A stretch of 63,016 bases of DNA, counting the filler, from Salisapilia sapeloensis CBS 127946 (taxonomy: Eukaryota > Protista > Oomycota): NCBI GenBank assembly GCA_023334545.1. It is 10 parts of 10 records of this genome, joined end to end, with 100 filler letters (N's around TTAATTAATTAA, not from the genome) between each part and the next. Parts side by side here need not be neighbours in the genome. Positions count along the whole stretch, not along the records: positions 49,701 to 51,870 come from JAADVB010000945.1; 9 more parts are not named here. The stretch is one strand, 5' to 3'. Within the stretch, counting starts at the first letter, position 1; each line of letters starts with the position of its first letter. Under the pieces are notes generated by a model. The model did no database searches. It saw nothing but the letters and a program-made list of their open reading frames with translations, and was not told the origin of the DNA. The position numbers were made by a program, and so were the translations under genes. Below are positions 3,576 to 51,870 of the stretch, in pieces.

Positions 3576-6500
3576 CTACGAAACTATCCTCCTATAGCAG
3601 CAGTTCACACGCCGCCACGTCTCCCACTTCGACACGCTTTCGATGCGATCCTTTGGTCGCCACAGTGTCAAGTCCTCGTCCAGGCCTTTGCCGTGAAGAC
3701 TGGCGCTGTCGGAAGTCCCATACTGGAGCTCCGTCTCCACCAACATCCGGCGCCCGTCTGCCGCCGCAGCCATCTTGACCACAGCCTTCCAACCTTCGTG
3801 AGTCAGTCCAAACGAGGTACTGCTCGATAACAACGGAGGCAGGACGGTTCGCTCCGAGCTCTTCTTCCACCAGTACAGCTCTAGCACCAGACGCTCCGTG
3901 GCGGTGTCGTGGTAGCACATGTAGTCGCCACCAATGTTTTGGCAGCCCCCGCCAACAAGACTCGACAAGCCGTTTGGAAACACGCGCGTGATGCGTGGTC
4001 GCCCGTCGCAGATCACCTCCATCCATCCTTCCTTGCGCTCTGGCAGCAGACTCTGTTCAGACCGGACCTACGTTCACACAAAGCTGTCAGTACCATCGTT
4101 CACCTTCGCCGCTACTCTCCAAAGATATTTAGTTCATGAGAGATAGGAAATGCACGCACCCGAAGCGTTCGCTCCGCCGTCACGTTCAGGCGCACTCGCC
4201 TCAGCTGAGACAGCGCCAGCAAAGACGACCACAGCGACATTCCACTGCCACCGACGCCTGCACCGCCAGACGCTCCGTCGTTGTTGCTGTCGTTTCCGCG
4301 CGAGCCGTCTTCTTGCAAGATCCATTCGCCGTCGAAAGGCGATATGAACGTCCGACCCATCCGCTCATCGGACGACGGCGAGGACTCGTCGGACGACGCA
4401 TCTCCTCCCAGCTGCTGTACCTGCATCTCATCCTATTAGCTACTGCCTCCTATCCTCTTGTGCACGAAATGAACATTCGCTCCATCCAACGTAAACGTAC
4501 CATGTAGTTCTCTCGCATCTGCGCCACAAAGCTTTCCCACGCACCCACCGACGGGTCCGACAGCACGCTTCGAAGTGGAGAGCGGAGGCTGGCGAAGCGG
4601 TCGTACTTGAACACGAGCATTAGCACGGCGTCGCTCAGCCACCTCGTGCTCGCTTGCTTCTTCGCGTCTGCGAATGCAAATGAGGACGATCGGTTGGCAC
4701 TTTGCTCCTCCTTCGACTCTCTCGCAGCAGCCTCGCCGCCACCTTCAGTTTCCTGGTTGTTCCTGTCTCCAGCCGCCTCTGTCCTCTCCGTGCTACTCGT
4801 GAAAGCAGCGCCGTGCTGTGGTCTGTTCACCATACCTCCCCCCTCTGCTCTCGTCATCATGTCACCCAGTGCAGTCTGCAAACGCTCACTCCACATGCTG
4901 ACCCAGTGTCCGAACGACCGACGCAGCTGCTGCTTTTCTAGCAAGGACGGCGTGTGCAGATGCAGGAACTCTCTCGCCAGCGCCAAGTTCTGCTGCGTCA
5001 TCGACCAGATAGCTACCTCCAGCAAAGGACGCAACAGCCTTTGCACGTCCGTCGCACCTAAAGCCTCGTCTCCCATCGGCTCATCCGTGCTGGTGCTGTT
5101 GTTGCTCGCTAGAGTAACGGGCGCCGACTGCGCCGTTCCTGCCGCCAAACCTGCCGAGCGTCGGTGCGAAGGCGAAGCGAGTCTGTGACTTTGTGGGTGA
5201 GGCAGGAAGCGTAGGAGCACCGACAAGTCTTCCCGAGCCTTCGGAGCTGTCGAGCTCTGGGTAGTCCCTCGGCCACCCGACCGGTCCATCGGCCCAGACT
5301 TGCTGCTTGTGGCCACCGGATCTTCCTCGTTACCAGTCTCGACGCTCGATCCGTCCCAGTGCTCTGCCAACGCCCGCTCCAAGGCACTTCGCATGACTGC
5401 GTCTTCCACGATGTGCTGCAAAGACACGTTGGACAGGAAGAAGTGGACGACAGCCAAGTCCTTGAGCTGCTCTCCGGTGCCACGGTTCTGAAACTCCCAC
5501 GAAAACTGCTCCTTCATAGATGCACTCTTCCGAGCGTCCACAGCTGGCGTGCCAGAGACACCTCTCTCGGCAGACGGAGATTGATCGTCCGACAAGACGC
5601 ATGGACAGCAGTATTCGTCCTCCATCTTCCTCTGGATCGACGGTCGTCGCCTATAAGGACTCCGGGCGCGTGGATGGCCAGAGGAAGCCGGATAGTACGA
5701 ATAGAGATGCGTCCGCCCTCGCTCTCGAGCGAGCGCACCGCCACCGCCCTCCGTCGCTCTCGGTCCGCTCTCGATGCGAGTGTCCACAGGTCGAGCGGTT
5801 GTCTGCATGGGGTAATCGTACGGAGAGAATCGGTTCTGTCGAAGCCCTGGTCTGGCGCGAGGCGACGGATGCCGGTCTTGTGGCGTATGACCACCATTGT
5901 CGTCAGGTCCGAAAGGATGGCGGTTCGTCACACTCAACTCGGCGAACCGAAGGCGATGGTGCGCTTCCCCCATCAAGGAAGCGTCGCCTTCGCCTAGTCC
6001 TTCTTGCTCGTCCCCCATCGTATCGTCCTCTCTTTCGATTGTGTCCTGCGTAGTGGACCTGTCCCCGCCCTCCACGACCATCTGCGTGTTAGCTCTAGGT
6101 AATCCTGAACGAACCGTCTCAGCGGACGACTCGGCAGCTACCTCCGGCCGAGACCTTGCTGCTCGGTCACCTGTCGTGGTCCCGGTCAGCAGGTCCGGTC
6201 GAGCCAGAGCAGTGGGCGTGGAAGCGTAGGTGCCGTCGTTCGCGCTTTCAGGAGATGATGCGTCCTTTTCCTCCTGTAGCCGATGAGACCGGAGGCCCGT
6301 GTCGGATAGAATGCTCGCAGGCGTCGACTGGTACTCTTGGAAGGCTCGACTTATCTGCTCCCGGACGATTTCCTGCAACTCTGGGTTATTCGCGCCCAAA
6401 GGGTTCGAGTAGTGCGGGATCATGCCTTCCAGAGGTGCCGTTTCATTTCCAGACCGTCGATAGGAGACGACTGTGAACGCCGGCGACTGGACGATTTCAA

Positions 6501-49700: not shown

Positions 49701-49976
49701 ATCCCAAGACCGTGTTGTGCTTGACAAGCGCGACGGTAGACTGGTTCATCTTTTGCGTGCAAGTGGTCGATTTGTGTACTGACCTTCCTGCATGCTTTTC
49801 ATCTGCTCATCCTCTCGTTCTCGGACGAGATCGTCTTCGACGATTGTACCAAGCTAATAATAAAGGGATATCAAAGAAAAGAAGATAGGAACGATAGAGG
49901 GTCTCAACGGGATTCATGTTGCCATTAGAACACGACCCTACCTCTTGACATGGATTGATAGACGTAGTGGCTCCAT

Positions 49977-51040
<1,064 letters not shown>

Positions 51041-51042
51041 GG

Positions 51043-51094
51043 CTGGTACATACACACAACATAGCCGTTATATCGGCGATATTCGTTCAAGCAG

Positions 51095-51125
<31 letters not shown>

Positions 51126-51284
51126 CAAGAGTATTTCTCAGCCTCAGCATCCGCCGACCCTCTCGTCATGTACGAGCAAGAGTTTCGACATTGCCTTTGG
51201 CACCCCTCGCTGAACTCCCATTAGTGTGTTTCGTCCAGGCAACCCGATGCATGTAGGAAAGAACGATAGGTAGAAGTTACATAC
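51043..51284 (-). other. 5'-UTR intron of THI4 containing the riboswitch
   Basis: Donor CG|GTATGT at 51284; acceptor TACCAG|CCATG, 2 nt before the start codon; lies downstream of an Inr element. Confidence 0.8.
51085..51215 (-). ncRNA. TPP (thiamine pyrophosphate) riboswitch aptamer, cis-regulatory
   Basis: Minus strand: GUUCAGCGAG-GGGUGC-[long P3]-CUGAGA-AAUACUCUU-GG-AACCUGAU-CCGG-GUCAUA-CCGG-CGGAGGGA-CUGCUUGAAC. The TPP consensus elements (GGGUGC, CUGAGA, UACYC, ACCUGAU, AGGGA) are present and P1-P5 can pair. Confidence 0.96.
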
Positions 51285-51329
51285 CGAGTTGAAGAAGCGA
51301 AGAGTTCTTGTTGACTTGCGTAGTACGGT

Positions 51330-51347
51330 GCGAAATCGAGAATGAGC
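51330..51347 (-). promoter_or_regulatory. Oomycete Inr/FPR core promoter of THI4 (predicted TSS about 51343)
   Basis: GCTCATTCTCGATTTCGC versus the oomycete consensus GCTCATTYYNCAWTTT; about 60 nt upstream of the first donor. Confidence 0.7.
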
Positions 51348-51870
51348 AAGCTTTGCGGTTGTGAACACTCCAGAGTTGAGCACCCTCTTTCTACGAATTG
51401 CACATATCTTTCTATAACGGAAATATAGAAGACAGAAGAACTATAACGAATTGAAGATGTGCAATTTGTAAACGAGATCCTTGAGGGACGGATGGAATGA
51501 TTGTACCAACAATGTTGAAGTTTCCACGAGCACCTTTACTTGAGCAGATCTACCTCACGGTTAAGGTGTTATTGAGGCTGAATGAGTCTTTACTTTCAAT
51601 AGATGGTGGCTTTTGTCAAGGTAACTGAGAAAGTATTGACAGTCTTTGTTCGAGCTGAAATGGAACATTTATTTCGTATGAAAAGCTATGCGGAAAAAGT
51701 ATTCTTGAGTTAAAAACGACTTCGCAGCAGGGTTTGGAATATAGTCATGTAGAATTGATGGAAGTTTGTTTTTCGATTTCGTCCATAATGGTACCATTGC
51801 CTTTTGATGGTGATTTGCAGAAAGCTATTTGGCCGACTTGTACCCACAGCTTAAATTTATTTGGACACAT

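Follow-up and report, generated by a model that had tools for sequence, protein, structure and literature searches.

The window analysed here is a stretch of 63,016 nucleotides from Salisapilia sapeloensis CBS 127946, made up of joined pieces of its genome assembly. One of these pieces, at window positions 49701-51870 (JAADVB010000945.1), holds a single gene, on the minus strand. The features of this gene and of its leader are, in the direction of transcription:

51330..51345, minus strand: INR (TCATTCT, 51345-51339) with a weak FPR, likely the core promoter and transcription start (pattern match)
51285..51343, minus strand: non-coding exon 1, about 59 nt, without AUG (sequence; start inferred from the INR)
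51043..51284, minus strand: candidate leader intron, 242 nt, GTATGT...CAG, with the aptamer and eight upstream AUGs inside (both ends fit the splice consensus)
51247..51252, minus strand: ATGCAT box, a conserved upstream AUG motif (6-mer comparison of leaders)
51220..51224, minus strand: branch-point-like CTAAT, 7 nt 5' of the CAG opening P1 (spacing conserved in relatives)
51085..51215, minus strand: TPP aptamer, P1 to P1 (RF00059 match and fold)
51045..51089, minus strand: AG-free tract from aptamer to acceptor, 45 nt (its first AG is the proposed acceptor)
51043..51045, minus strand: proposed 3' splice site CAG, 2 nt 5' of the start codon (sequence; first AG past the aptamer)
50862..51040, minus strand: THI4 coding exon 1, ATG at 51040 (RNA joint)
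50809..50861, minus strand: coding intron, 53 nt, GTAAGT...AG (removed in four of four RNA runs)
49977..50808, minus strand: THI4 coding exon 2, stop codon included (PF01946 Thi4, 355 bits)

The PF01946 match agrees with the earlier note, which had named the downstream gene as THI4. Joining 51040-50862 to 50808-49977 yields an in-frame coding sequence of 1011 nt, and the exon 2 product matches Arabidopsis THI1 (PDB 1rp0) with an E-value of 3.4e-124. The nearest named proteins are those of Aphanomyces astaci (79%), Globisporangium polare (78%) and Saprolegnia diclina (78%). When 49 THI4 proteins are compared in a maximum-likelihood tree, the S. sapeloensis protein falls in a 13-member clade with all named oomycetes (support 98/96), as sister to the other 12 members; chytrid, Rhizopus, green-algal and Perkinsus THI4, as well as sequences of haptophyte type, are placed outside supported branches. 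The codon and phase of the coding intron (after ..Y[T/A]FA, GC/GT) are the same as in A. astaci, S. diclina and G. polare, and the position also matches, by eye, in a further contig (L004). Judged from these comparisons of protein and gene structure, the host gene is an oomycete-type THI4 orthologue. Its sister placement means that the host could also belong to a very close, non-oomycete sister lineage.

With 56.4 bits (E 7.5e-10), the Rfam TPP model RF00059 has a match on the minus strand at 51077-51217, which is complete (model positions 1-105) and not truncated. The score lies above the curated gathering score of 54.3 bits, at or above which a covariance-model score denotes membership. The aptamer limits proposed from reading the sequence, 51085-51215, prove exact from the pairing of P1, in which GUUCAGC (51215-51209) pairs with GCUUGAAC (51092-51085). 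The aptamer fold has a z-score of -2.3. The RF00059 score is modest because of three features of the S. sapeloensis aptamer: a 53-nt insert in P3 (51145-51197, minus strand), folding into a long hairpin; the lack of P3a; and one C-to-U change in P2, which makes a G-C pair a G-U pair. The blocks that contact the ligand (CUGAGA, ACCUGAUCCGG and ACCGGCGGAGGGA) are intact in the Rfam alignment, and the P1-P5 architecture is present throughout, with CUGAGA (pyrimidine pocket) and ACCUGAUC...GGCG.AGGGA (pyrophosphate arm). These ligand-contacting blocks and the core are invariant in nine aligned oomycete-type aptamers. The P3 inserts differ in sequence, and most of them fold as hairpins. For the CUGAGA block of S. 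sapeloensis we relied on the Rfam alignment, as MAFFT had picked the wrong copy of a duplicated GCUGAG. This tandem duplicate (GCUGAGGCUGAGA) is located at 51136-51149 (minus strand), on the 3' side of P3, and the second copy alone fits the Rfam model. The aptamer ends 45 nt 5' of the Thi4 ATG; both are on one strand and within one RNA contig. On sequence and fold, the S. sapeloensis riboswitch is real, conserved and attached to an oomycete-type THI4, and it is predicted to bind TPP.

Upstream of the aptamer, the earlier note had recognized an Inr/FPR promoter. The combined INR and FPR pattern (16 nt: YCAYTYY, 2 nt, MWTTTNC, that is, YCAYTYYNNMWTTTNC; PMC3599244) has one match in the piece, at 51330-51345 (minus strand), with one mismatch; 0.2 matches are expected by chance, so this match is weak when taken alone, and we retain it as a likely promoter. 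TCATTCT is the commonest INR form in P. infestans (PMC3599244). Part of exon 1 (51285-51314) is covered by one RNA contig. The proposed intron boundaries have the sequences described in the earlier note: a GTATGT donor sequence is found at 51284-51279 (minus strand), and a CAG ends at 51043, immediately before the last two nucleotides of the leader. All eight upstream AUGs (uAUGs), at 51282, 51252, 51221, 51191, 51169, 51150, 51062 and 51051, are located in the candidate intron, and those at 51062 and 51051 open reading frames that extend across the main AUG in a different frame. With eight uAUGs and two reading frames running over the main AUG, an RNA that retains the leader would be a poor template for THI4. 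A second CAG, at 51210-51212 (minus strand), lies within the 5' strand of P1.

Our own scan detects RF00059 directly 5' of THI4 in seven loci:

L001, A. astaci: RF00059 at 3846-3970, 53.6 bits
L002, G. polare: RF00059 at 3791-3910, 70.2 bits
L003, S. diclina: RF00059 at 3808-3957, 56.6 bits
L004, Logan contig: RF00059 at 551-670, 67.9 bits
L005, transcript-like contig: RF00059 at 30-152, 64.6 bits
L006, transcript-like contig: RF00059 at 89-184, 79.3 bits
L008, transcript-like contig: RF00059 at 140-261, 68.9 bits

Altogether, the same aptamer is observed directly 5' of THI4 in Aphanomyces, Saprolegnia, Globisporangium and five more full oomycete-type contigs, at 53.6-79.3 bits; two further contigs, cut at the 5' end, hold its 3' part. 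The A. astaci and S. diclina leaders follow the same plan as that of S. sapeloensis, with an INR-like sequence, a short exon and a GTAAAT or GTAGTG donor. Across ten leaders, the AG-free tract that follows the aptamer measures 13-71 nt, with a median of about 47 nt compared to about 16 nt expected, and is often pyrimidine-rich. Aptamer and tract together contain 28 AUGs. In the related leaders, uAUGs are carried by the P3 insert or by the downstream tract; between the first AG and the main ATG, there are none in any of the nine leaders that have an AG.

Two further sequence elements recur 5' of P1. ATGCAT is the sole 6-mer common to at least five of eight leaders in this region (shuffles give 0.00). 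It is found in S. sapeloensis, L001, L004, L006 and L008, 20-87 nt upstream of P1 and often adjoining the donor; in L001, L006 and L008 it comes immediately after a GTAA donor-like site. This box may be a conserved first uAUG or a splicing element. The other element is a CTRAY box, mostly CACTAAC, positioned 7-8 nt before the P1 CAG in S. sapeloensis, L002, L004, L005, L006, L008 and L016; no such box was detected 5' of P1 in the two Saprolegniales leaders (Aphanomyces and Saprolegnia). Just past the 3' strand of P1 comes UUGAC or UGAAC. As oomycete coding introns use CTRAY about 10-20 nt before their AG, the boxes flanking P1 look like splicing signals.

Oomycete TPP riboswitches have been described before. 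According to Mukherjee et al. (2018, Sci Rep 8:5563, PMC5882874), NMT1 and THI4 are under their control 'in a manner similar to fungi'; the same authors list THI4 riboswitches in eight oomycetes (Supplementary Data S2): A. astaci, A. invadans, S. diclina, S. parasitica and, in Pythium, P. aphanidermatum, P. arrhenomanes, P. irregulare and P. iwayamai. The suggestion that a THI4 riboswitch might be undescribed in this lineage must therefore be abandoned. The accompanying statement that oomycete riboswitches reside mainly on transporter genes holds for Phytophthora and Hyaloperonospora, the only entries where transporters are the sole hosts, but not for Aphanomyces, Saprolegnia and Pythium with their THI4 elements (PMC5882874); the transporter-only entries are probably what that statement refers to. 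Our L001 and L003 matches are the published elements themselves (A. astaci KI913212 113866-113985; S. diclina 233090-233236), both of which are marked 'Intron' (PMC5882874), and the annotated A. astaci and S. diclina genes begin 248 and 273 nt upstream of the ATG, respectively. The S. sapeloensis locus is a further case of an already described kind, whose description so far is computational: our literature search found no experimental test of any oomycete riboswitch.

RNA from the same organism was available as assembled Logan contigs from four runs (two samples, one study); such contigs lose rare isoforms. Each of the four runs provides one contig, identical to the S. sapeloensis sequence and skipping 50809-50861. 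Since the contigs skip the coding intron, they derive from spliced RNA. From 50862 they continue through the acceptor at 51043 and the whole aptamer, to 51259, 51259, 51274 and 51314, and the contig reaching 51314 also crosses the proposed donor at 51284. Neither a 51284/51043 nor a 51284/51210 joint is observed in the contigs of the four runs, where a minor spliced form could be lost. The uninterrupted contigs indicate that the dominant transcript retains the leader. No contig of the four runs covers 51315-51870, and the contig ends place the transcript start between 51314 and about 51345, which fits the INR. The proposal of a riboswitch within a 5'-UTR intron is therefore supported as regards the layout, the splice consensus and the leaders of relatives, while the splicing of 51043-51284 is not seen in the RNA contigs.

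Contigs of relatives present a similar picture. In L005, L006, L007, L008, L009 and L010, THI4 appears without the conserved coding intron, and the aptamer or its 3' part is kept; these contigs are probably mRNA-derived. A search for spliced leaders among the relatives' short transcript contigs returned none, six of six transcript-like contigs keeping the aptamer. Contigs L007 and L009 begin inside the aptamer. We also observed that RNA runs X6-X10, from a second organism and dated 2025, share with the piece 5-8% of its sampled words, which probably correspond to a conserved part of THI4 in a relative.

Our preferred explanation, to which we assign a probability of roughly two in three, is that the THI4 leader of this oomycete-type stramenopile harbors a TPP riboswitch that acts through regulated splicing of a leader intron. 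Transcription would start from the INR near 51343 and yield the 59-nt AUG-free exon 1, followed by the 242-nt segment 51284-51043. When TPP is scarce, the entire segment would be spliced out, leaving a short and clean leader that permits THI4 translation. With TPP bound, splicing would be hampered by the closed aptamer, whose long P1 is adjoined by branch-point-like sequences on either side and itself contains a CAG. Occlusion of the branch point or of the 3' splice site by the closed aptamer is the most likely cause of retention, and the uAUGs and upstream ORFs (uORFs) of the retained leader would then block THI4 translation. What we infer in this scheme is TPP binding, the splicing of 51284-51043 at all, and the direction and cause of the switch. 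We favor a regulated leader intron because of the arrangement of the uAUGs, the AG-free tract leading to the acceptor and the recurrence of this layout in ten related leaders, and because the orthologous A. astaci and S. diclina elements are located in annotated introns. Against this explanation weigh the missing 51284/51043 joint in the contigs of the four runs, the aptamer kept in the six transcript-like contigs of relatives, the single 5' splice site upstream of P1, leader-aptamer complementarity at chance level and the small changes in predicted accessibility.

The computed fold energies are compatible with such a switch. Left unconstrained, the leader adopts a structure of -94.0 kcal/mol that is not the aptamer fold, compared to -87.8 kcal/mol when the aptamer is enforced. 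That the unconstrained structure is about 6 kcal/mol more stable is as expected if ligand energy is needed for the switch. Predicted splice-site accessibility changes little: the donor is predicted to be paired in both the free and the aptamer-enforced state, and only the distal CAG and the AUG shift, modestly. Retention of the leader together with removal of the coding intron is also what the Neurospora crassa model, as outlined in PMC5882874, predicts for thiamine-replete cells, and the cultures from which the RNA was obtained were probably thiamine-replete.

The RNA data also accommodate another view: splicing of the leader would never occur, the mature mRNA would be the RNA with the aptamer, and TPP would act on THI4 translation or mRNA stability, much as in the 'Type IV' class that Mukherjee et al. 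(PMC5882874) describe and that is so far unexplained. All ten transcript-type contigs (four of S. sapeloensis and six of relatives) keep the aptamer and have lost the coding intron, and enforcing the aptamer lowers the predicted probability that the main AUG is unpaired from 0.80 to 0.55. We nevertheless hold this view to be unlikely, as an RNA with eight uAUGs and two ORFs overlapping the start codon is a poor THI4 template in either state, and as conservation is seen for the donor consensus, for the AG-free tract and for the lack of uAUGs past the first AG; the annotated introns around the orthologous elements (PMC5882874) argue in the same direction. In a further scheme, P1 would decide between 3' splice sites or branch points instead of 5' splice sites: a proximal branch point (the CTRAY box) and acceptor within P1 (a 75-nt intron, 51284-51210) would compete with the distal acceptor at 51043. 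In its favor are the CTRAY box at fixed spacing before the P1 CAG in S. sapeloensis, L002, L004, L005, L006, L008 and L016, the use of CTRAY shortly before the AG in oomycete coding introns, and the relative's contig L010, which (over positions 1-10) starts exactly at AG/CGAGGGG, that is, at the P1 CAG. Such a start could reflect a graph branch at a splice acceptor, or chance. Use of the proximal acceptor would however keep the uAUG-bearing aptamer in the RNA, while P1 would hide the CAG precisely when TPP is bound, so that the simple version of the scheme has the wrong regulatory sign. Moreover, the 75-nt segment is itself retained in the RNA, in L006 only some 26 nt separate the P1 CAG from the nearest donor, and the CTRAY box is absent in Saprolegniales. 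Overall, we hold this scheme to be unlikely as well.

It is very improbable that the aptamer is a functionless, decaying relic, or that the contig stems from a fungal or algal contaminant. A relic might be suspected from a score about 2 bits over the gathering threshold and from the extra G-U pair in P2, but the low score is due to the 53-nt P3 insert, and the ligand-contacting blocks do not vary among the nine aptamers. As for contamination, which the earlier note had mentioned as a potential refutation, we reject it: the THI4 protein belongs to the 98/96 clade of named oomycetes, apart from fungi and green algae, the coding intron is at the position common to oomycetes, and an INR of the oomycete type is present.

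Returning to the regulated leader intron, the S. sapeloensis element can be compared with known TPP riboswitches. It shares with the oomycete THI4 riboswitches (A. astaci H257_17149, S. diclina SDRG_11906 and four from Pythium; PMC5882874) the core CAGCGAGGGGUGC ... CUGAGA ... ACCUGAUCCGG ... ACCGGCG.AGGGACUGCU, a location just 5' of the THI4 ATG, a short exon 1 behind an INR and the position of the coding intron. It differs from them in its longer P3 (the 53-nt insert), its duplicated GCUGAG, the C-to-U change (G-U pair) in P2, CTAAT instead of CTAAC upstream of P1, and a THI4 protein that is sister to the others. In the 'Type I' riboswitches of N. crassa NMT1 and THI4 (Cheah et al. 2007, as summarized in PMC5882874), high TPP raises unspliced and uORF-bearing forms. 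In the Type I scheme, two 5' splice sites surround a uORF and a strand of the aptamer pairs with one of them. As in Type I, the S. sapeloensis aptamer would lie in a 5'-UTR intron, the non-productive form carries uORFs and unspliced RNA is expected at high TPP. In contrast to Type I, S. sapeloensis lacks a second 5' splice site flanking a uORF and any detectable pairing between aptamer and splice site, and it carries the oomycete-specific ATGCAT and CTRAY boxes. A search of the 130 nt upstream of P1 found a single GTRNGT-like donor, at 51284, and no second 5' splice site. Complementarity between leader and aptamer, evaluated with RNAduplex in nine leaders, was no better than in shuffled sequences, 0.03-0.99 of which were at least as good. 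The donor (UCGGUAUG) matches the L5/P5 strand (CAUACCGG) over 8 bp, but we rejected this pairing, which is at chance level and not conserved.

These comparisons lead us to a tentative idea, which we would call possible but less than probable: oomycete THI4 leaders may use a lineage-specific expression platform composed of a single donor, an ATGCAT box, a CTRAY box 7-8 nt before the P1 CAG and, after P1, a second branch-point-like motif and an AG-free tract. In such a platform, TPP-driven closure of P1 would control the availability of the branch point or 3' splice site and result in retention of the whole intron, instead of a choice between 5' splice sites.

Green-algal THI4 and THIC genes reportedly have TPP riboswitches in 5'-UTRs or introns, where an extra exon is said to introduce a uORF or stop codon. 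The S. sapeloensis element resembles the green-algal switches in its gene family and in being a eukaryotic aptamer without P3a and with a variable P3; unlike in these, no extra exon with a uORF or stop is evident. Bacterial thi-box leaders of thiC have a nearly identical core, but they are without introns, and their platform is a terminator or sequestration of the ribosome-binding site. When we scanned metagenomes with the exact aptamer core pattern, 13 loci were obtained, 12 of which are bacterial thiC-type leaders (L011-L015, L017-L023), in agreement with the published remark that oomycete aptamers closely resemble bacterial ones. The remaining locus, L016, is Globisporangium-like and unspliced, and no spliced leader form was found among the 13 loci.

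The locus adds one more lineage to those with an oomycete THI4 riboswitch, apparently an early-branching one on the THI4 tree, which supports the view that the group's common ancestor already had the element. The general understanding of TPP riboswitches in eukaryotes is unchanged. As S. sapeloensis RNA-seq data with leader retention exist, the mechanism predicted for oomycetes could be examined directly, and the value of the locus lies in this testable question of how oomycete leaders turn TPP binding into gene control.

A few observations concern the surroundings of the gene and its product. The RNA contigs extend 313-413 nt beyond the low end of the piece (49701), so that the 3' UTR would measure at least about 590-690 nt, or the contigs run into a neighboring transcript. 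In G. polare, the THI4 protein (P0006) is labelled 'Rib72 protein' in its source, and the gene directly downstream is a DM10-domain (Rib72-like) gene, so the names appear to be shifted by one gene (L002 4001-5208 and 5760-7443). The order THI4, DM10 gene, Ins134_P3 kinase is common to L002 and L004, and in L001 and L003 THI4 is flanked by an MFS_1 gene on one side and a 2-oxoacid dehydrogenase gene on the other.

In the S. sapeloensis protein, a Thr (50295-50297, minus strand) occupies a position in the motif A-T-GHDGP where the other 12 clade members have Cys (S-A-C-GHDGP). The same Thr is observed in fungal, Perkinsus and some green-algal THI4 proteins. We considered a 'non-Cys THI4', in which the sulfur-donor Cys is lost, and rejected it, since N. 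crassa THI4 (3jsk) has Thr at this position too. The TQSCMDPN motif is kept in S. sapeloensis, and it is in this motif that the donor Cys presumably resides, going by yeast Cys205. A paper on cereal THI4 places Thr213 just upstream of the active-site residue, in agreement with a donor Cys in TQSCMDPN.
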